Source of the DNA: Pavona decussata
Lineage: Eukaryota
Length of the DNA stretch: 64,000 nt
Assembly (NCBI GenBank): GCA_977016875.1
Contig: CDRNST010000035.1
Location: forward strand, 1,054,001-1,118,000
Direction of reading: 5' to 3'
Shown here: piece after piece, positions 2,385-26,900 of the stretch
How positions within the stretch are numbered: the first letter of the stretch is position 1
How the letters are laid out: every line of letters starts with the position of its first letter
Notes under the pieces: generated by a model
The model's database searches: none
Seen by the model: only the letters and a program-made list of their open reading frames with translations
What the model was told of the DNA's origin: nothing
Made by a program: the position numbers and the translations under genes

Positions 2385-5300
2385 TCACTTGTGCTGCTCT
2401 GCGGGAGTTACTTCCACTTGTACCTTCAGCTTAAACGTGACACCACCAAAGTCTGCCTTACTTTTGTTTTCTTCTGTGCATTCGTCTGGACCTATTACTG
2501 AGATTTAAGAACAGGATTCCGTTGTACATTAATTCCGAGTTAATTTTCTGGAAGAATAGATAATTCGTCCTTTTCAATACATGTGGGTGAAGGGCTCTTT
2601 CTTTTAATCACGGTTCTTGGAATTTTTAATAGAAGCTAAACCAAGGTGAAGATAATGGAAGAGATTTTTACAACTGATTTGACTCAGATGTCATTATTCG
2701 CCAACTGAAGGGGCTGACCGTTTAAAACAGCGATGACCTTTAGTGGTTAACTTATTAAAACTAGTCCTTAAAAATATGTACTGAAGAACGTCGACCGGGA
2801 AGAGTCATATGCATGCACGCCTGTAAAGAAAACCTTCCAGTCGGCTGATATGACGCATTCAATCAATTCACACCATGAAAAGTGATTCCCTTCATTCACG
2901 GTCCTCATAGAAAATGGTCCTTCGTGTCAATCTCGCTCATCAAGTTGCTATGTTCTGTCTTCTTTAGCCTTTGTTTTCACTAGGCATATAAGCAAAAGCA
3001 GAAGCTCAAACGCCGCTTAAGCAAGTTAGAATACCTGCAACATAAGCACGTTCGTTCTTCTTGTGCTTACGATTCAGTGCCATGGCGCCGTTTTCACCAA
3101 TGACAGCAGGGACGACATAAGCACAAGCAAGATAGTGGACGAAAAGGTTGACCGCCTTGTGCTTACATTGACTGAGGGGAGCTGGCATCGAGAATTTCGT
3201 CTAGAAATGATTTTCTGCGCATGCGTCTGTCCTTATGCATATGTAGCTGGTGTTTTCACTTGCTTATCTTTATGTTTGTGTTTATGCTTATGCCCCAGAG
3301 AAAACCAGCCTTTTCTTAGCACAAACCGGCCACCTCGCGCACCTCGCGAGCCATTTAAACCTGTCATAGATCCTGTGAAAAGTGTAAACAATTATCCCCA
3401 CGTGAAATGAGAACTAAGGTATGACTTGATGCACGATACCATTCCTCGTTTTTTTTTTTTTTTTAATACTGACAGACTGTACTGATTTATTACCTTTGCC
3501 ACACAGTCTGTGAGTTTAATTTGTGGACTATCACTGAACCGAAATTAGCCCATTTTCGAAACACAAAACTGTAGGCTGCGTAGCAAGCACAGTGAAATAT
3601 CAAACGAATGAAAAATATAGGGAGTGAGAAAGAGCGGAGTGGGCAAGGGGGATGGGGGAACCTCCCGAACCCCGCTCTTTGCCTCGTACCCTGTATTTTT
3701 TCATGTGCCTGCATGTGCTATAACGGCAAATGTTTCGTCAATGCCATGAATTATTAACTTGATTTCCTGATTGATTTTGATTGACACTAAGTTACGTAAT
3801 TAAGCCACGTGAATAGGCCTGCTTTCAGTTCAGATATTTTAGATTCGAAGATACGTGCATGTTTTGCTGACCTGTTTAGCTGACCCGTCTTCGGTTATAC
3901 CCTGACCTGTTTTATCTGTCGCTGACCTGTACGCCGTGAAACAATCCTACTAGACATCGTCAAAGAAGTAAGTTCCAGTGCTGTTGTTCTAGCTGATAGT
4001 TTTACTCGTGTGTTTATGTACCGATGGATTCTGTTCAGTTTCTCAAATGTATTTCGTTCTTTTCTTTAGATCGAATAATATAGTGGAATAAATTATACGA
4101 TTTGCGTAACCTAGTTGCTGGATTGCCTGTCTGGTTTTATTGGACCAGCAAATGTTTAACATATTGTGCTATCAGCGAGTACTACTTGTTGATGTCAAGG
4201 TTGAGGCGAGGGGAGGGGATTGGTGGTCGTTCTTCTGTGTTCTGATTTGCCTTGAGTTTCTATCTTATACGTACTTGCTTGTAGTCACTGTTCGATTTTT
4301 GCCTCCCTCACTTACCTTCGCGTATATGCAGTAAGCTGGTTTGCTTTGTCTCGTGACCCGTGTCTGGTCCTTCGGTACATTGGACTGGAATTGGAAATGC
4401 TGGTGACTCTTCAGTGCAGACTGAAAGACCGATCGAAATTAAAAATTACAAAAAAATATACAGAGGCATCTAACCTGAAATTTTGCAATTTTCCGTAAAT
4501 GTCTTAGTCGCCTCCCGGAGGGTCGTGGGAAAAGTACTCCATATACATAAGCTAATATTGATATGTGCCGCCCCAAGGCGATGGTTTTTGAGCTGGTTTT
4601 GTCATGAAATGGGTAGAGATTTTATATTTATTTAGGAACCAGGGTCCGTTTGCATAGCCCCTGGAAACGGAAAACGGCTTTTAGCTTAGTGAACCGAAAT
4701 AGCATTCGAGATGCAGAGAAACTCGCACTTACCTTCGTAATTATGTAGAGCACATAACGTTTTCTGATGGAAAAATCGTTATCCAGCAAATAAAAAGCAC
4801 TCCAACTATAATTTTTTTTTCGCCAATATATTACTGATTGGATCCTTAACTACAGGATCCCGTGCTTCTGTTTTCAATGCGCTGGTCCTTAATTACAAAT
4901 ATGTTATCTGCTGGATAGCAAATGATCCATTAAATAGAGTTATCCACTCCTCAAACAACTTAGCGAGCCTCTGAAAAATGCGATGGATTTTACATGCAAC
5001 CAGTTTGAAAACGGATATAGATCTTAGGGGCTGGGTTTAAAAACGAGCATGGAAAAATTAATAGTCCGGGACTTAAAGCCATCGGGCGCCAAACCTTTCC
5101 CAAAATTGTGAAGAGTACTCCTGAAAAACCAATCTTTATTTCAATTAATGCAATGTCACTTTTAATTTAATAGCATGGGAGATTAAGGACAAGAAGGTAT
5201 TTGATTAGTCAGTGGCCTGTGTATTCTAGGGAAATAATTGAGTTCTCCCACCTAGACTGCCTAGAAGTCGAAACTATGACCTTCCGATTACTACTTCGGA

Positions 5301-8287
5301 TGCTTTAACACTTAGCTTCATGTACAAGAGACTCGTGGTAACTAAGCCATTATGGAGTTCCATCCCCGCCAAAATTCTATGTTTTTGTGTTTCATTCTAC
5401 TTCTTGCATTATAATCTTCATTCTACAGTTCCACATTCAAAATTACAATTGTGACATTGTACTTTTCGTTTTCGACATCGCGCATTCGGCATATTATCAA
5501 TATTACCACACGCATTTTAGACTCAACGTTTGATTTTCAGCAATCCTTAGACATTTGGCATACTCAACGTTTCGGGTCTGGATACTGTAATTTTTCAACA
5601 TGCAACTTTTTGTATTTCGGCTTCATTCGAAATTCAACCGCAATACAGGAATCGTGGACGCGCAAAACCCTCGACTGATCATTTGTGGGGATCAATTTCC
5701 CTGATTTCCCTTATTTGTGATTCAAAGTGCGGGTCATTGACGGTCGGGGATTATTTGCGGCTTTGTGGCGCGGTGGTAAGTACATTTCGGAAACAAAATA
5801 GTCCAATCCTTTGTTATTTGATTCCCAGTAATAAATCAGAAGCGCCATGCTTAGCGCTATCTCTTACCAAACGTTTATCACGTCAACATTGATTTTATCA
5901 GTTGTAGCCCATTGAATTGACTTGCATTGAGCATCATCTCTAATGATGTCCGCCTCATTCAAAATTAAGTTGATATCGTATTTACAAGATAGCAGATTTC
6001 TATGGTCTATTTAATAATTATTCCACGAGCGGAGCGCGATGAGATGGTAGATAGCCAACGACGCGCCGAGTTGGCCATAATCATCTCAAATCCAACAAGC
6101 CTAAGTGGAATAATTCAGTTTTATCTAAAACAATCAAGAAAAATGGCTAGATCTTGCTTCTTTCGCCTTGCAATAACAACCAGAAGTCAATTTAATGGTC
6201 GCTATTTCTCGGACATGGTATAATTGCTCAGATATCATGGCCGCTAAGCCAATCAAATCCCTGGAATTGCATTGAACAATAATCCAGTATAGACCGTAAA
6301 ATGACGTCATAAAATGTTCAAAACTTAAGTGGAACCACATACCGCAGGCAAGTGGTCTCACCGCCAAGTTTGTATATTCATCGCGTCATTTTATGGTCTA
6401 GAGGAATTTAGTCCATAGAATACTGTCGTTGATTTGATTTTTCGACGTACGTAGGGGAACACCATTATAAATCAGTCACGGGTGGTCACGTGTCTTAGAA
6501 GCCAGAAAAAATTCAGATTCCGATGGACTGCCAAATGGCACTGTTGTCAACGGTATGGTACGGGTTACCAACACACGAATAATTCACGTCCAACTCTTTC
6601 TTTTATTTTAACACAATGGAAACGTTCACGATCTACGTTTGTCTCAACGATCTCCGTTCTAAGCACGGTTAAAAGGTTCTTTCAGGCTCACATAACAAGT
6701 TAATAAGGAAACGAGAGTCACGCATCATTTGTCAAGCTAACTGAAACCCCTCTCAATTTTTATCAGGGGCCCACTTTCCGCTTTATTTATGCCTGAACAT
6801 GCAGTCTCGTGTTTCCGTATCACTGGCTTCAGCTTCACGACAACAAGAGACGAGAGACACTGTGCTTAGATTCTGTTTTAGTAATCAGTTAAATCCTCTT
6901 ACAGTGGTCTTATCTGTCCAAAATCAGGCATGTCGTTGTGGACCGATTCACCTTCTTGCACCTTCTAAAGAACAGACATGTTGCCGTGCTGAAACGGACA
7001 AAACACCAACTAAACTCGATAGAGTTTGTATAAAGCGGCCTGCAGACTTTGTGTTCGTCTTTCAACTCAACTTCAGATACTTTGTTACTTCGGCTTCCAA
7101 AGGAAATCCTGAGTTTAAAAACTGGGCACGGGTTTTTCTTCCCGTCGCAAATCGCCCTCTGACGTCTTCTGCGCGTGCGCGGGATATAAGAGTATGTGTC
7201 GAAAAGGTCAGCGGACTTCGGCGGAGAACATGGTGTGTTTGCACGCTTGATCAAGTGAACCTATCTGTCGTTGGTGGAACCAGAGGGATTGTAACCTTGA
7301 ATACGCTAAATTTCATTGTAAACTGGCACTAAAATACTACGAGTGTCCATTTTGGAACGCAGAGTCGGCCCATCGGACTTTACGAGAGACCTTAACGGGC
7401 AAATTCTTCCGAATGAATCCAGTATCAAGAAACCTAGATTTAGGGAGCTATCTCTCCAGTCGGATCTGAATCGACTAGACGCTTGGTCAAAAGACTCTGG
7501 TCTCACTTTAAACGAGACAAAATGCAAGGCTCAGAGAATATCCAGGAAACTAAAGCCAATCGAGTCATCGTACAGCATCAAAGGGAAAGTTCTAGAATCA
7601 GTGGTCACCGAGCGCGACTTAGGAGTCTTTGTCGCTAACGACCTCACATGGAGCAAACAAGTACTTGAACAGTCGTGTCGCGCAAATAAGCTGTCCGGGT
7701 TACATTAGACGTAATACGGGATTCGTACGAAGCATTGACTTTAGGCGATCGGTCTAAATTTCACTGATAGTTTCTAAACTTTCTTTGCAACTTTCGACTA
7801 TAACGGCAACGAAACGGTATGTCCGTGACTTAACTACAAGACACAAACACTTGTCTAAGAGGAAAAAAGAAAACGCTTCCGGTTTTCGACCGTGACCGGA
7901 ATGTAAACGATCTAAAATTACAATTATTTTGTGGCAATACTAACTAACCCTAAATTGCTGTTGCTCGAAGCATGGTTAGCGCTAACCCGGGTTACATACC
8001 ATAACAACCTATAGGTTTTAATACCTCTTATTTCATGAATCACACATTTTCTTTTGTTATTCAACATCCTTTATTTAACTTACATACTTCATGAATATTA
8101 AACTAACTGAAACGAGGGATTTATACAGATAAATCCCTCATTTACATTAGCAGTACTGCGAGAAACGCACACATCAGGTTGCTTCTATTGTTCTCCGTTT
8201 CTCACCTAAGTGTGACGGTACTAATTAGCCGGCGTTTGTCCCCTTGAACAAAGGAATAATTTCATGAAATAAGTCAGATAAATACCT

Positions 8288-8324
<37 letters not shown>

Positions 8325-10878
8325 GTAATACCTCCGTTCTCGGTATTTATCTCTTACTTAACCAATGGTTAGCGCTAACCATGCTTCGAGCAACTCAGCC
8401 CAGAACGTTAACATCCCGGTCACGGTCGAAAACCGGAAGCGTTTTTTTCCCTCTNNNNNNNNNNNNNNNNNNNNNNNNNNNNNNNNNNNNNNNNNNNNNN
8501 NNNNNNNNNNNNNNNNNNNNNNNNNNNNNNNNNNNNNNNNNNNNNNNNNNNNNNNNNNNNNNNNNNNNNNNNNNNNNNNNNNNNNNNNNNNNNNNNNNNN
8601 NNNNNNNNNNNNNNNNNNNNNNNNNNNNNNNNNNNNNNNNNNNNNNNNNNNNNNNNNNACGAAGCTCAGAGCTTGTGGGGTCGTGTGAAAATAACTGATT
8701 ACAGTATAAAACTATATTAAAATGGTGATAACATTACATACAGAACACAAAACAATTGACTATAGCAATAAATTGTGTCGTGTAGTAAGGTCACGGACAT
8801 CAAAACTAGCGTTTTCCTCTCCGTTCTCGTCGTTTGAGGTCTACCGTTTCGGCTACCGTTTCGTTGCCGTTATAGTTGAGTGTTACAAAGAAAGTTTAGA
8901 GACCCTCATGGAAATTTAACTTTTTTTATGTTATGTATACATACGTCCTCCCTGGTGTCACTCAACGACCAAGAACGTATACATATACGTCCTCGTACAA
9001 ATTACATCGGTCAGAGTCCGGTCGTTCGATATTCCTTGAATACATCCCCTCTGATTGTTGAAGTAATCCAAGATGGCCGCCGGTTGGAGGGTATACAAGA
9101 CTGTGGTAGGGAAGGGGGCTAATTAATCTCGACAACATTCAAAATGTTTATTGCTTCACAGCAGCGAGACTTTATGTTCGTCTCACAACTCAGTCAAAGT
9201 CAGAAGCTTTGTTTCTTTCACTGTTGGACGAACAACGACAAAAACGGGATCATTCGCGATGAGCAATACGGTAGCCATTTTAATCTCTGTGAATTCTTGA
9301 GGTTTAGATATTAAACATTTCGAAACACGCATTTGGTTGCCTGAAATCAAGGCTTTTGATAGGCTAGTTAGGTCTCCGCATTAAAAATGTTGATCGCTTC
9401 ATAGCAGTGGGATTCTCGCGTAGTGTATGATACGAATGCCTTGGTATATTAGCTATTAAATAGTGGTAGCAAGAAGAAATAAACAGTGCCGTCTTGTAAG
9501 TGCGTTCCTCAATAATTAAAAAACGTTCCGAAAATATTTTGCAAATGTCACGCAACCGACAGTTGCTCTGTCAGACCGTTGTGTCAGACTTGGGATCGCC
9601 TTCAATCCCCTAACTTCAGGGTGAAAGAGTTAAGTAATCCATGTCGCTGATTTGTTCACCCTAAAAGTTAAGTTTTTTGTTTGCCTATTAACTTTGTTTA
9701 TATAATTCCTTTGTCTCCGTGTTGGCTGGCTGTAGCCTCGACATAGCTACCCTAAAAAACGTTAAAACTAATTAAATGAAATTGAAACAATCAGGAAAGG
9801 GCCTACCATAACTAAATTTCTGCTATGCAAGGTATGGTTAGCGAACGCACTCCTATAATTCATGATTACTCCCAGTATTATAGGATTTGCTTTATTTTCC
9901 GTTGAGAAACCGCGCGTGTTTATACATCTGACGTCATCTGTACTCTAATTAACAATTAGACGGCGAGCTCGAGGTTTCTATCGGCTGATAGTTGGCGAGG
10001 GTCGAAGCCCCGAGCCAACTATCAAAGGCGATAGAAACCAAGAGCGAGCCGTCCGATTGTTTAAGCATACCTCAGTGATCGATCTATGAAGCAAAAAAAT
10101 CTTTATATTTCATAAATTTTGATATATTTGTGCAATGATGCATGCTAAATCGCGCGCGCTCTGACAAACTGCCGTCTATCGATCGATAGACGGCACCTGT
10201 GTAGCCAATCAGATTGCGCGTTACGCGATAGTCGGTCACTGAGGTATGCTAATAGACAATAGCTACGAACCAATCAGGGCGCGGGTATTTTGACAGTTAT
10301 TGTAAAAACGTAATCGGGCTATAGCAGTTTCTTATGGCCTGATAAGTGGGCAGTCCTGAAAAGTTGCGTTATTAAGCAATCAAATCGCACTTATAAATCC
10401 CGAATCGACACTTTCTTTTTCCAAGGCCCTTTTCTCTACAAGTTTTTTTCTAGAAGTCGTGAGGTCATCAGAACTAGTAGATAAGAAGTGTTTGTAAGTT
10501 CTCGAACGGGATTGAAATCACCCGGATGCCTACTTGGTATTGTTCGGCTAATAAAACGGGCACTGTTGATACAAAAAATAGAGACAGAAGAGTTATTTAC
10601 CATCCTTCATAACTAACTCAGAATTTAGCACCCCAACTAGACTCTCATCTATTGGCATTTTCTTTCTTAAGAACGACAGGAATATTAAACATATCTTGGC
10701 AATGCCCCGATTTTAAAAGAGGGTCAAGAAAAACGTGAACCGCTTGGGACTCACCAGTGATTCGGGCCTCCGTAAGACGATCATACTCAGTCCGAGTAAG
10801 TAGTCTTTTCAATGACTGGAATAAATACCCCAGGCCACAGCAGTTAAATGACTGCATTTTCTTCTTTGAAGCTTGCAT
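2385..10878 (-). CDS. Small CCGL-leader / TRAF-motif protein, paralog 1 (3 coding exons, 111 aa)
   Basis: Hand-spliced exons 10878-10755 (donor ACTG|GTGAGT), 4420-4316 (tttcag| ... GAAG|GTAAGT) and 2491-2385 (aatag|, TGA); both introns are phase 1 and join in frame. Protein: MQASKKKMQSFNCCGLGYLFQSLKRLLTRTEYDRLTEARITVCTEESPAFPIPVQCTEGPDTGHETKQTSLLHIREGPDECTEENKSKADFGGVTFKLKVQVEVTPAEQHK. The same exon structure recurs in two paralogs. Intron 1 contains an N-gap, so an extra exon cannot be excluded. Confidence 0.8.
7448..7750 (+). mobile_element. LINE (CR1/L2-group) reverse transcriptase C-terminal fragment
   Basis: LQSDLNRLDAWSKDSGLTLNETKCK...ERDLGVFVANDLTWSKQV..RANK, the typical post-YADD region; truncated and frameshifted. 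Confidence 0.85.
7755..8917. repeat. Nested inverted repeats / MITEs around an assembly gap
   Basis: Three concentric inverted pairs: about 7755-7820 with 8853-8917, about 7860-7912 with 8402-8452, and about 7960-7988 with 8365-8395 (GTTGCTCGAAGCATGGTTAGCGCTAACC). Confidence 0.75.
8455..8658. other. Assembly gap
   Basis: Run of N. Confidence 1.
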
Positions 10879-11177
10879 TTTCTCCTAGATACCCCCAGTC
10901 ACTTCGACAGCAAAGCACCTGAGTAATAAAGCGAACGAAGCAATGCTAAACTGTTTGGCACGTTGCGCTTAGCTGACCCCGCAGCTTAAAGCTTCCACTT
11001 TGTGAGCGACGTACCGTGGGAAAAAAAGAAGGGTTGGCAACGCCTACTTTTTCTTTCTTTTCTTTCTTTCTTTTGTTTCCGTCTTGAATGAGGCCATGCT
11101 TACCTGTTGACTGATCACACGAATATAGATCTCAGCTTTGCCCAAGCAGAGCATCTATTAACTGAGTTAAAAACGAT

Positions 11178-12270
11178 AAATCTGACTCGCCACTGTACGT
11201 GTGCGTTGTGACGAATGTAGTGCAGACGTCGGTGCCTTGTTTACACGCGAAGATCCACATCGACATCTTCTGATTGGCCACGAGCAAGCTGCGAGTGACG
11301 AGGTCGAGCGTTGGCATTCAGGCGTAAGGCAATGCACGCGCTACGCGTACACTTGTGGCAAGTAATTAAGCGTAAATGCCGATCACCCAGGTCAACTTGA
11401 TAGTCTTTTTTTTTGTTTGTTTTTTTTTATGCCCAATGGATTAGAGAATGAAGAGAGTAAAGCTATAGCTAACGTAGTCATTGAACGTTTTAAAGTACCA
11501 GAACGGCAAAATTCTGAGAACGCAAAGCTAGCTATCGGTTAAACGCCTTCATTGTAAACCGGCACAATACATTTGGCTAAATATCCCGTGGGAAAAAGCT
11601 GGAAGGTATAAACACAGGTCAACGTTGCATATTTGCTGAATTTGCATTTCAAAGAGGCGTGGGAAAAATGAAAGAGTTTGTACTGGGTCAGTTCTATAGG
11701 GTTTTATAACACTGGCAATTTGAGCAAAAAACGAAATTCAAGTTACTAGGTAAAACATTACCTAGTCTTGTTGTTTATCACTGAGTGTTCTATCGTTACA
11801 TTGTCGCGTACAACGACAAATCCGACTTACCGTTGTACGTGTACGTTAATTGTGACGAATGTATTATGAAACATCAGTGCCTTGTTTACACGCGATGAGC
11901 CACATGGACGTCGTGCGACTGACCACCCTCGTCCGACGAGCACGTGGCACTCGCAGCTTGAGCTCGAGCGTTGGCATTCAGGCGTAAAGCCATGCACGCG
12001 CTACGACTCGTGGCACTTAGCCACAGTCAAAATGAATGCCGATCAGCCAGGTCAACTTGATTGTCTTTTATTTTTGTGCCTCAGAACGGATTATAGAATG
12101 ACTTGAGGGAAGCTATAACTAACGTAGTAAACGTATTAAAGTACCAAAACGGTAACTGAGAACGCAAACCTAACTATCCGTTAAACGTCTTACTATTCAG
12201 TCAACGTGGCACGATACGCTTGGAGAAATATCCTGGGAAAAAGTTGGAGGGTATATTATAAATGCAGGTC
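11178..12270. repeat. Local tandem duplication (about 640 bp period) upstream of paralog 1
   Basis: About 11178-11620 aligns with about 11818-12265. Related copies occur at about 21190-21370 and partly at about 20130-20280. Confidence 0.8.
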
Positions 12271-23934: not shown

Positions 23935-26900
23935 TCAGTCACGAGCAGGAATTACTTCCACCTGTATCTTCAGCTTAAACCTGTCTCTACCACATTTTGT
24001 CCTCAGTTTATCATCCTCGGTGCACTGGATTGGACCTGTTACATTTAAAAACAGAATTACGTTGTACATAAATTATATAAGTAGAATCGATAATTTGGCC
24101 TTTCAGTTTGTGTTTAGGCGACTCGTTAAGGGCTTTTTTAGCACTATTTTAAATAGAAGTTGATGCTCGTTGAGGGTGTTCAGAAGATTGAAACTAACCA
24201 GTTTAAATTGATTTCCCTTTGCTTATTTTCTTGCCAATTCTATGACGATTCGTAATTATTTGTACTGTTTTAGATTTTCCTTTTTAATTAAACCATTGCC
24301 TTACCCCTACTCGTGGCATGCCTGCATGCCGGTACCGTTGCCCTAAGCCATAGTGTATGTACCACGTTAAGTCATGTTTAATATACCTACTAAACGGCAA
24401 CAAAAGTGACGTTGTTTATTGGCTGACTGAAACGCCCTTATATATACAGTGAACGTCGAAAGGAAATAGTCTTATGCCAGCTAGGGTTTTTAAACACATA
24501 TTTTTGGCCTCTAGGCATAAAAGATGGATAAAAATGACCGACAAACGCAATATATTCCATCAAATCATCTACATCTACATTTAATTTAGTCGGTAGAGTC
24601 GTGAGACATCACACCAACTTTTCTTAAAAATAGATTACATAATAAATAAATAAATAAATAAATAAATAAAAACGTATATAAATATGAGAAAAATAACATA
24701 ACATCCTATTTACTAGCTTTACGTAATTTATTTAAAATAATTTGTTAACATAGTTTTAAAACTTCGCAATGACACAGAATTTACAATATCTTAGGGCAAA
24801 GAATCCCATTTGCATATAGATCTAGGAAAAAAAGAAAACTTTAAAAGGTCTTTGCTAATTCTAGGTATTCTATATTTAAATGTATGACTCAGTTATTCCC
24901 GCGTTCTTGTCTCACTATTAGCTATAGGCACTATATATATTTTTCTGCCTCGATGTCCATGAGATTAATAATATGGCTCAGTTTATACATTAGTGCTAAT
25001 CTGTTTTTCTTTCTTCTCAGTTCTTAGGTATCAGGTATCCCACTCCAGTTCTTTAAACATGTCTGAAGCGCTTGCGGTTCGATCGTAATTTTGAAGACAA
25101 AAACGTGCCGCCTTTCTTTGGACTCGTTCGAGTATAGCAATATCTTCCTCGTAGTGCGGATCCAAAGAGGCGCTCGCATATTCTAATTTGGGTCGTACAA
25201 TGGTTGTATAAGCAATTTCTTTCACTTTCTTAGGGCAATTTCAGAGATTGCGTCTAATCAAGCCTATGGTTTTACTTGCGGAATTTGAAATTGATGCGAT
25301 ATGCTCCGACCATTTTAACCCAGTATTTACAGTAACTCATGAATACCATGCTGAGTGACATTCCCGTGATGAAGTCTCCCTGATTGGTACTGCTCTGTAT
25401 CAGTCTCATCAATCAAGCTTTTGCAGCGCTGTCGTGAGCCATTTAAACCTGACATGGATCCAATGAAAAGTAACGACAATTCGTCATGAACCATTAAATT
25501 GCAAATAAATGCGCGACTCAGTTATGGAGGTGGGGGAGGCGAAAACTAGTGTTATATGAAAACTTTGAATTATATGGACTGCATCGCCAGTATCAACCTA
25601 GATCAGAAACAAAAAACTTCAACTGGAAGCCAAAGAGAATGTCTAGATATTTCAAATAAATGAATTGTCAGAAAGTGGTTGATTACCCGGGGTTAGAATT
25701 CAGGTTTTATTTATTTATCTATTTATTTATATTTTATCCCTTAAGATTTTTTTATTTTTCTTGGTTACCTTGGTTACTTTTTTGTTTGTTTGTTTGTTTG
25801 TTTGTTTACTGTTTCATTCTCGTCCCTTCCGTATTCACTGGCCTACCTTTGGTTATTTGCCTTAAACCACTTTCTCTTCCCGGCTCACGCAGTCTAGCAA
25901 AGTACAGCTGATCCATATCTTGTCCTTCAGTACACTGGACTGGAAATGTTAATGACTCTGCAGTGCAAATGATTGAGACCATAACTGTAACATGGGATTT
26001 ATTTCGACGCCTCACAAAATTGTACATGTCGTATAACGTGCGATCGAAGAAAGGCCACTAGGATAGTCAAGCAGCTTGAGAATTACGATGGTTTTATAAA
26101 GCAGTTCGATTCACTACAATGCTCGAAGCCTTTTTTATATGAGTTAAGGGATCCAAACAGATTAAACGGTGTGTTGGTTTTCTTAAACATCCCTAAAGGG
26201 CCATAAAACAATCTGAGATATCTTCTGCAAAATTTAAGCAAAATACTTAAAAAGTTTTCAAGTAATTTGCTTAAATTTTATAATTGGGTGTAAAAATGTT
26301 TTCACAATGAAAAGGCACTAATAAGACGGCAGACTTGAACCAATAGCTGTTCGTGATTATTGTTGAGAGGCGAGAGAGGAATGGATTCGAAAAATTAAAC
26401 TTTGAAAATTCGAGAATCGATTGAGCTCGGCGAATTGGTCCCATCCCATGGCTCCCCGCGCGCCTCAATCTACTCTCCCATCCAATCGTCTGTCGATCAA
26501 CCAACTGCAAACCATATTCCTCCACCATGGGCAGATAGCCAACCGATCGCTGATTAAAATCCCGTATTCAGAGGAAGAGTAAGGGCTCTAGTCACTAGCC
26601 GCTTAAAAAAATATATTATCATTCCAGTTAGACATTGTCCAGTAAATATTTTTGTATTTGTTGACCAAATTAACCATAATTCTCAAGCATTCGGGTACGT
26701 TTAATTACGATGGAAAGCTAGAGCATTTGCTGGTCAAATCTCGTTTAACTCATGTTTCGCAACACGGGAAAATCCAAGGAATAAAAATCTGAAAAATGCC
26801 CTTTGTATTCACCGTAAAGAATCCGAACACGTCAAATTATGTAGCTTGTAAGTTATGTTTCAAAGGTACTTATGATACTAAGATGACCGGGGAGAGAGAA

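Follow-up and report, generated by a model that had tools for sequence, protein, structure and literature searches.

A coral gene family of predicted small proteins with one invariant TRAF-type motif and a variable second copy

Introduction

TRAF proteins recognize short linear motifs in their ligands: TRAF1, TRAF2, TRAF3 and TRAF5 bind Px(Q/E)E, Px(Q/E)xxD or Px(Q/E)xT, and TRAF6 binds PxExxZ; the TANK peptide reads SVPIQCTDKT and the CD40 core reads PVQET (PMC6125299). Here we analyze a 64,000-nucleotide stretch of the Pavona decussata genome (GenBank assembly GCA_977016875.1, contig CDRNST010000035.1, positions 1,054,001 to 1,118,000 of the forward strand; hereafter the window). It carries three tandem copies, P1, P2 and P3, of a gene family in which exon 2 encodes the motif PVQCT (site 1) and the last exon opens with a related motif (site 2). 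An initial annotation of this DNA had read site 2 as a paralog-specific TRAF code. We show that site 1 is invariant and that site 2 differs even between orthologs. The explanation we favor, in which our confidence is evenly divided, is that the family encodes coral-specific small, probably lipid-anchored proteins with one essential predicted TRAF-type motif and a decaying second copy.

TANK (I-TRAF), whose motif is bound by TRAF1 and TRAF3, shares PIQCT with site 2 of P3, and site 1 differs from it solely at P-1 (positions are numbered around the Gln or Glu at P0, with Pro at P-2 and Thr at P+2). In both TANK and the coral family an acidic residue follows the motif, and both fit Px(Q/E)xT. In contrast, the coral protein, of roughly 100-160 residues, is about one-quarter the size of TANK, has an N-terminal Cys-Cys leader, and lacks a coiled coil and any Pfam match. 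Neither the domain of TANK that binds TBK1 and IKKe nor its C-terminal zinc finger was found, and no homology outside the motif was detected among 1.84 billion representatives. Only a short motif is common to the two, so homology is not implied.

The TRAF2/3 sites of CD40/LMP1 type (PVQET, PQQAT) have the same P-2/P0/P+2 pattern as the coral site, and their membrane-proximal presentation would be shared if the coral leader were lipidated. The coral family differs in lacking a transmembrane receptor body and in its invariant Cys at P+1. Lipid-anchored sorting adaptors exist in innate immunity, for example myristoylated TRAM. The coral protein is likewise small and presumed to be N-terminally lipidated, with acylation predicted from a CCGL sequence, but it contains no TIR or other domain.

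The linker of MAVS combines TRAF2/3/5 and TRAF6 motifs. The coral family likewise has a PxQxT-type site, and it is encoded beside genes for CARD-only proteins and RIG-I-like receptors (RLRs). However, its PxExxZ-type (TRAF6-type) site is found in P1 only and is not conserved, and it has neither a CARD nor a C-terminal membrane anchor, the C-terminus being a short polar, strand-like block. To our knowledge, anthozoans have no MAVS ortholog and cnidarian RLRs signal without MAVS; CARDIB, the only CARD-only neighbor studied, is a reported repressor, not an activator.

Results and Discussion

Site 1 is invariant in all copies

Self-comparison of the window (~38% G+C) and exon-wise tblastn identified three tandem sets of exon 2 and last exon, all on the minus strand (Table 1). 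Ortholog contigs were reached from open reading frame (ORF) fragments found by word search and from the cluster mates of these fragments. The other coral assemblies are labeled B, C, C', D, D', E, G and I, and the genome analyzed here is W. The comparison set comprised 13 gene copies from seven coral contig sets.

PVQCT was read on the minus strand at 4388-4374 (P1), 18894-18880 (P2) and 25943-25929 (P3). Its invariance in exon 2, claimed from the window alone, was borne out: site 1 is P-V-Q-C-T in 13 of 13 copies, and no other column of the exon-2 alignment, in which mean column identity is 64%, is invariant. All five codons vary synonymously (CCA/CCG, GTC/GTT, CAG/CAA, TGT/TGC and ACT/ACC/ACA), with zero replacements. 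Judged from these codons, site 1 is under strong purifying selection across copies and species. In six-frame translation the background of P.Q.T was 0.012 per 100 residues, and P[VI]QCT occurred exclusively at four homologous places. Given the low P.Q.T background, two such sites in one protein of ~110-150 residues are not a chance occurrence.

A third CTxE repeat had also been proposed at the opening of exon 2. The letters are indeed present on the minus strand (VCTEE at 4421-4407; ICTAE at 18921-18907 and 25970-25956), but the residues vary among copies and lie upstream of the acceptor used in RNA. Elsewhere the position reads IYTAE, FYTAG or NCKAAE, and species I has nothing corresponding. 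The segment is flanked by two acceptors, an upstream AG and an internal ctgcag^ (^ marks the splice site), both phase 1; in P3 their first exonic bases are 25984 and 25957, respectively. The internal acceptor is conserved in all species, P1 of W excepted, and its use at 25957 was seen in an RNA contig; neither gene of species C retains the upstream AG.

Site 1 matches TRAF2/3-type ligands

PVQCT and PIQCT are perfect letter matches to Px(Q/E)xT, and site 1 fits this motif in every copy. The assignment of PIQCT to the TRAF2/3 motif of TANK was upheld, both by the TANK peptide and by the consensus. In the genome we found at least 128 TRAF-type MATH matches. One of them shares ~70% identity with human TRAF1/2/3 and retains RYGYK of the polar pocket, GDG, whose Asp makes the contact with Thr at P+2, and the serine triad. 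Since these TRAF2/3 hot spots are conserved, docking of PVQCT into the groove of a coral TRAF MATH domain appears chemically plausible. The TRAF-type MATH matches often lie in dense tandem clusters (contigs C12, C58, C200, C314, C153 and others), which represents a very large TRAF expansion.

Alternatively, PVQCT could be a linear motif for a non-TRAF partner, such as another MATH protein, a Cys- or Thr-modifying enzyme or a protease, its likeness to TANK and CD40 being coincidental. V and C are invariant besides P, Q and T, which is more than the TRAF consensus demands, and no domain or homologue links the family to a known pathway. We nevertheless regard this explanation as rather unlikely: the motif is an exact match to the best-characterised TRAF ligand cores, the ancestral protein would have carried two copies, as expected for trimer binding, coral TRAFs keep the contact residues, and the gene neighborhood is one of innate immunity.

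Site 2 varies within orthologous groups

The six codons that open the last exon form site 2. In the window it reads PDECTE in P1, PIHCID in P2 and PIQCTE in P3, and the difference between paralogs first noticed there was confirmed letter by letter. In another coral, species C, the P1 site reads REECTE, the critical Pro thus being lost in one of two P1 orthologs. P2-type sites read PIHCID in W (His codon CAT), PIQCID in B and RMKCTE in the one P2/3-type gene that C has, and species E has PIHCTE (His codon CAC). PIQCTE is kept only in the recent P3 group (P3 of W, P3 of B and copy gA of B); D reads PIQSTA, and two D' copies read LIQSTA. The residues seen were P/R/L, I/M/D/E, Q/H/K/E, C/S and T/I. 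At the key positions (P-2, P0 and P+2) site 2 has undergone at least seven independent residue changes and site 1 none; only at site 1 is the motif more conserved than its flanks.

A maximum-likelihood tree was built on 700 nt around the last-exon start. P1 of W and P1 of C grouped as orthologs (support 100/99), P2 of C fell outside the recent P2/P3 split, P2 and P3 of W were sister to P2 and P3 of B, respectively, E was unresolved, and D with D' formed the outgroup. From these groupings the ancestral site 2 is reconstructed as PIQ[C/S]T. A bivalent, two-site ancestral state is plausible, because PIQSTA is found in the outgroup and PIQCTE in P3. Across the P2 gene W and B are 98% identical, introns and exons alike, so the Q/H difference at P2 site 2 may even be a polymorphism. 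Comparison of exon with intron identity between W and B was discarded as a constraint test, since it is powerless where both are 98% (P2) or 93-94% (P3).

Site 2 fits Px(Q/E)xT in P3 of W and B, copy gA of B, D and P1 of W, and fails to do so in P2 of W, E, both C genes and D'. PIQCID fits Px(Q/E)xxD, and PIHCID, PIHCTE, RMKCTE, REECTE and LIQSTA fail the TRAF motifs; the earlier statement that PIHCI fits neither the TRAF2/3 nor the TRAF6 motif thus stands for PIHCID. PDECTE had been taken as a TRAF6 site. Its letters do fit PxExxZ, but not exclusively, for PDECT still fits Px(Q/E)xT. With P+3 already acidic, a single Q-to-E change suffices for the TRAF6-type pattern, and PxExxZ was not kept between the P1 orthologs of W and C.

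Downstream of site 2 the last exon encodes a block, G..(F/Y)K(L/V)K(V/I)x-VEV-x-P, that is conserved in every copy. This C-terminal block (2433-2401, 17683-17651 and 23977-23945 of the window) alternates hydrophobic and charged residues, looks strand-like, and in all species is more strongly conserved than the rest of the last exon.

The fast change of site 2 could reflect diversifying selection, through an arms race with a pathogen factor or through matching to an expanding TRAF repertoire, rather than decay. Many independent replacements fall within six codons beside a strongly conserved block, His at P0 arose twice (codons CAT and CAC), and the TRAF family of this genome is very large and tandemly expanded. 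However, two of the three third-base changes of CAG yield His, so that parallel change is cheap, and several changes remove the Pro or Gln needed by every known TRAF motif. Exon and intron similarity are equal between the two closest genomes, and neither the length nor the number of the sequences suffices for a test of nonsynonymous to synonymous substitution rates (dN/dS). We consider diversifying selection distinctly unlikely.

The TRAF code of the initial annotation supposes that P1 bridges TRAF2/3 and TRAF6, that P2 is monovalent and that P3 is bivalent for TRAF2/3, and that these differences are maintained. The letters match published consensus motifs, E at P0 is common to the P1 orthologs of two species, and P1 has lost an exon (exon 2b, see below), so paralog architectures truly differ. 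Such a code was not borne out: site 2 varies within orthologous groups (PDECTE/REECTE, and PIHCID/PIQCID between ~98% identical genomes), PDECT remains a match to Px(Q/E)xT, a Q-to-E change beside an existing acidic residue is enough to produce the TRAF6-type pattern, and genome B has an insertion within the P2 first exon. Variation among orthologs, which the annotation itself had named as evidence against its proposal, is largely what was found, and we give a maintained code little credence. These comparisons suggest that (i) the differences among PDECTE, PIHCID and PIQCTE are mostly lineage-specific decay and not a maintained division of labor; and (ii) paralog differences in a short motif should not be taken for a code before orthologs are compared, a comparison that here points to one essential and one expendable site.

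Gene models and transcripts

Six ATG-initiated first exons of one type, M-x-S-x-x-C-C-G-L, start at 10857, 20814, 27484, 29324, 34189 and 36594, and all six have donors of the form ...G^GT(G/A)AG in phase 1. In exon 2 both the acceptors and the donor (GAAG^gta) are phase 1, and the last exon opens with GT CCA and then runs to a stop codon. It follows from this GT CCA start that the split codon is Gly and that site 2 constitutes the first residues of the last exon. The internal exons are all phase 1-1, and splice sites and phases are conserved across the six first exons and three exon sets. Only three copies of the last exon were found in the whole 602-Mb assembly, so the joints seen in RNA contigs (see below) do not derive from retrocopies.

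Table 1. Features of the PVQCT gene family in the window (coordinates of the window; strand -, minus)
Feature	Position	Strand	Remarks
P3 first coding exon (type c)	27370..27484	-	ATG, M.S..CCGL leader, end TCA G^GTAAGT, phase 1; orthologous copies in contigs L001, L011; without RNA coverage
P3 exon 2 with site 1, PVQCTE at 25943-25926	25847..25984	-	RNA contigs over 25845-25960
P3 exon 2b, 102-nt cassette exon, phase 1-1, open frame	25347..25448	-	RNA joints; conserved with an open frame in 8 copies
P3 last coding exon: Gly-PIQCTE (site 2, 24033-24016), FKLKIQVEVIP, stop	23935..24035	-	
P2 first coding exon (type b), in-frame upstream ATG at 20835	20712..20814	-	
P2 exon 2 with site 1, PVQCTE at 18894-18877	18798..18935	-	
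P2 exon 2b, 138 nt, phase 1-1, open frame	18283..18420	-	P2-type letters in RNA contigs
P2 last coding exon: Gly-PIHCID (site 2, 17739-17722), FKLKVQVEVIP, stop	17641..17741	-	
Probable P1 first coding exon (type a)	10755..10857	-	~6.3 kb including assembly gap from P1 exon 2; same order without a gap in another coral
P1 exon 2 with site 1, PVQCTE at 4388-4371	4316..4420	-	
P1 exon 2b remnant: acceptor and first ~45 nt conserved, then no frame-keeping donor	3344..3391	-	
P1 last coding exon: Gly-PDECTE (site 2, 2489-2472), FKLKVQVEVTP, stop	2385..2491	-	
Extra first exon type d	29207..29324	-	Further copies from 34189 (e) and 36594 (f); identical phase-1 donor
Assembly gap (N) in putative intron 1 of P1	8455..8658	.	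Touches no exon or motif

The assembly gap lies in non-coding DNA, ~2.1 kb below the donor of exon 1a (10755) and ~4.0 kb above P1 exon 2 (4420), and no frame crosses it; the order from exon 1a to P1-type exons was also read on the ungapped contig of another coral (L008/L009). A reverse-transcriptase reading of ORFs beside the gap was dropped, as it had no Pfam support.

RNA contigs of four public runs with the same species label were placed on 23600-29500. A canonical joint connects the first base of the last exon (24035) with 25347, the end of exon 2b, and not with 25847, the end of exon 2, which instead runs on into the first bases of the exon 2b block. Canonical joints from exon 2 to exon 2b and from exon 2b to the last exon were seen in RNA contigs from two studies. 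The contig letters are typical of the P2 allele of genome B, hence the expressed copy that was seen is P2-like.

The exon 2b block is conserved within intron 2 of all three copies. Besides P2 and P3, the copies of B, E, D and D' and the P2-type copy of C have it as an open frame. In P1, both here and in species C, the exon has decayed: its acceptor and first ~45 nt are retained and the rest breaks the frame. Because the remnant breaks the frame, P1 most probably splices exon 2 straight to the last exon. The direct junction of exon 2 and exon 3 in the initial annotation therefore seems right for P1, but in P2 and P3 exon 2b intervenes (18420-18283 and 25448-25347), as the RNA joints indicate. 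One RNA contig has a shorter, in-frame 27-nt form of exon 2b, the 5' joint of which is non-canonical in this assembly. Another, of 250 nt (run X10; window 25347-25957), consists of the end of exon 2b, exon 2 from the internal acceptor, and the start of exon 2b. Its source is either a circular RNA or a transcript spliced across two tandem copies, and the join from exon 2b to exon 2 is in frame because the internal exons are all phase 1-1.

That the exons are untranslated, as non-coding RNA or chance open frames in duplicated DNA, is scarcely credible: protein libraries hold no annotated or spliced protein and RNA depth is low, but distant species retain open frames, matching phases and canonical splice sites, site 1 changes only synonymously, and the C-terminal block of the last exon is conserved.

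A predicted membrane-held ligand of TRAF

In the favored explanation, PVQCT(E) would act as a Px(Q/E)xT short linear motif that docks in the peptide groove of a TRAF2/3-like MATH domain, as PIQCT of TANK and PVQET of CD40 do. The di-cysteine leader is probably S-acylated, as predicted from its invariant, N-proximal CCGL, and would hold the protein at a membrane, where it could recruit or sequester TRAFs. The second motif would originally have provided two-site (avidity) binding to the TRAF trimer without being essential, and after tandem duplication it could have drifted or diversified. A secreted-peptide leader was rejected, since leaders of types a and b and those of the most distant species are basic and have no hydrophobic core.

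Several points weigh against this explanation. The motif is just five residues long, and the invariance of V at P-1 and C at P+1, beyond the TRAF consensus, may mean that the partner is another MATH protein or something else. The leader, rich in Arg, Ser and Leu and devoid of acidic residues, could also be interpreted as a presequence for organelle targeting. Fast change at site 2, taken alone, is compatible with relaxed constraint and with diversifying selection alike. RNA support is thin: contig depth is 2-6, the runs are only guessed to be RNA, and the letters are P2-type. Among the RNA contigs on the P3 stretch none covered first exons c and d and none had the joint of exon 1 to exon 2, which is predicted from phase and conservation only; no P1 transcript was found among the RNA contigs. 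Finally, no AATAAA or ATTAAA occurs within 900 nt past the stop codon of P2 (17641-16741) or P3 (23935-23035).

Orthologs and gene neighborhood

Genes for a peptidyl-tRNA hydrolase (Pth), a zf-DNL protein and two CARD-only proteins lie at 38-59 kb of the window. The order CARD-only gene, zf-DNL, Pth and PVQCT family is kept in D, E and I. In species I, the most distant, the Pth exon is 57% identical, and a first exon that encodes CCGL and shares the donor TCA G^GTAAG precedes an exon that reads A-PVQCTE; CCGL is invariant in the first exons of all species. The PVQCT family adjoins CARDIB and RLR genes. CARDIB, a CARD-only protein, is a regulator of RLRs and is reported to repress rather than activate signaling (preprint 10.1101/2025.11.22.689925).

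It is tempting, if quite speculative and in our judgment improbable, to see in the membrane-anchored micro-protein the TRAF-recruiting half of an anthozoan RLR platform, the valency of which would be tuned by alternative first exons and by in-frame shuffling of phase 1-1 exons between tandem copies. With its invariant TRAF2/3-type motif, its RLR neighborhood and an element in its promoter that resembles an interferon-stimulated response element (ISRE), the family is a concrete and cheap candidate.

Searches for homologues were run exon by exon, not with the joined protein. No Pfam family matched any exon at E<=10 with every exon scanned, nor was there a CARD match. Word searches with the exon 2 ORF and the exon 1 alignment returned only unspliced ORF fragments on coral contigs, and a profile search with the exon 2 alignment against the 1.84 billion representatives yielded no true homologue beyond one coral ORF fragment. 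Tandem-repeat ORFs with IQCTRGQ or VQCTNGQ among the profile matches were set aside as artefacts of summed repeat scores. As far as these sequence libraries go, the family is unannotated and coral-restricted, its homologues being confined to coral contigs. It is absent from the protein libraries searched.

A ~6.6-kb insertion interrupts the P2 first exon of genome B (L010 12445-12365 and 5780-5739). The T-R-T codons are duplicated at both ends of it, and P2 may be inactivated in that genome. On one coral contig two near-identical sets of exon 2, exon 2b and last exon flank the Pth exon (L014 557-1893 and 16816-18126). With sets on both sides of Pth, the family differs from species to species in copy number and arrangement.

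Arrays of first exons (M.S..CCGL, identical phase-1 donors) precede a single set of exon 2, exon 2b and last exon, in the window at 27484, 29324, 34189 and 36594. Such arrays were also found in other corals (L007/L011, L012 and L013), with at least six copies in one species, and an alternative-first-exon array appears to be conserved between corals. Downstream of the P1 stop codon (2385-1485) there are three poly(A) signals at 139-208 nt, in contrast to none for P2 and P3, and a single long transcription unit might be common to the tandem copies.

The promoter region of first exons a and b is conserved across species (window 20815-21114 and 10858-11157; L001 15335-15634; L008 9722-10021). Near -151 lies an ISRE-like GAAAACGAAAG, with a GAAA-rich run upstream; a 27-bp block is invariant, and the in-frame upstream ATGs at 10878 and 20835 are conserved. 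Between first exons d and e, the segment 32134-33360 of the window is dense in direct and inverted repeats and has long open frames in several frames.

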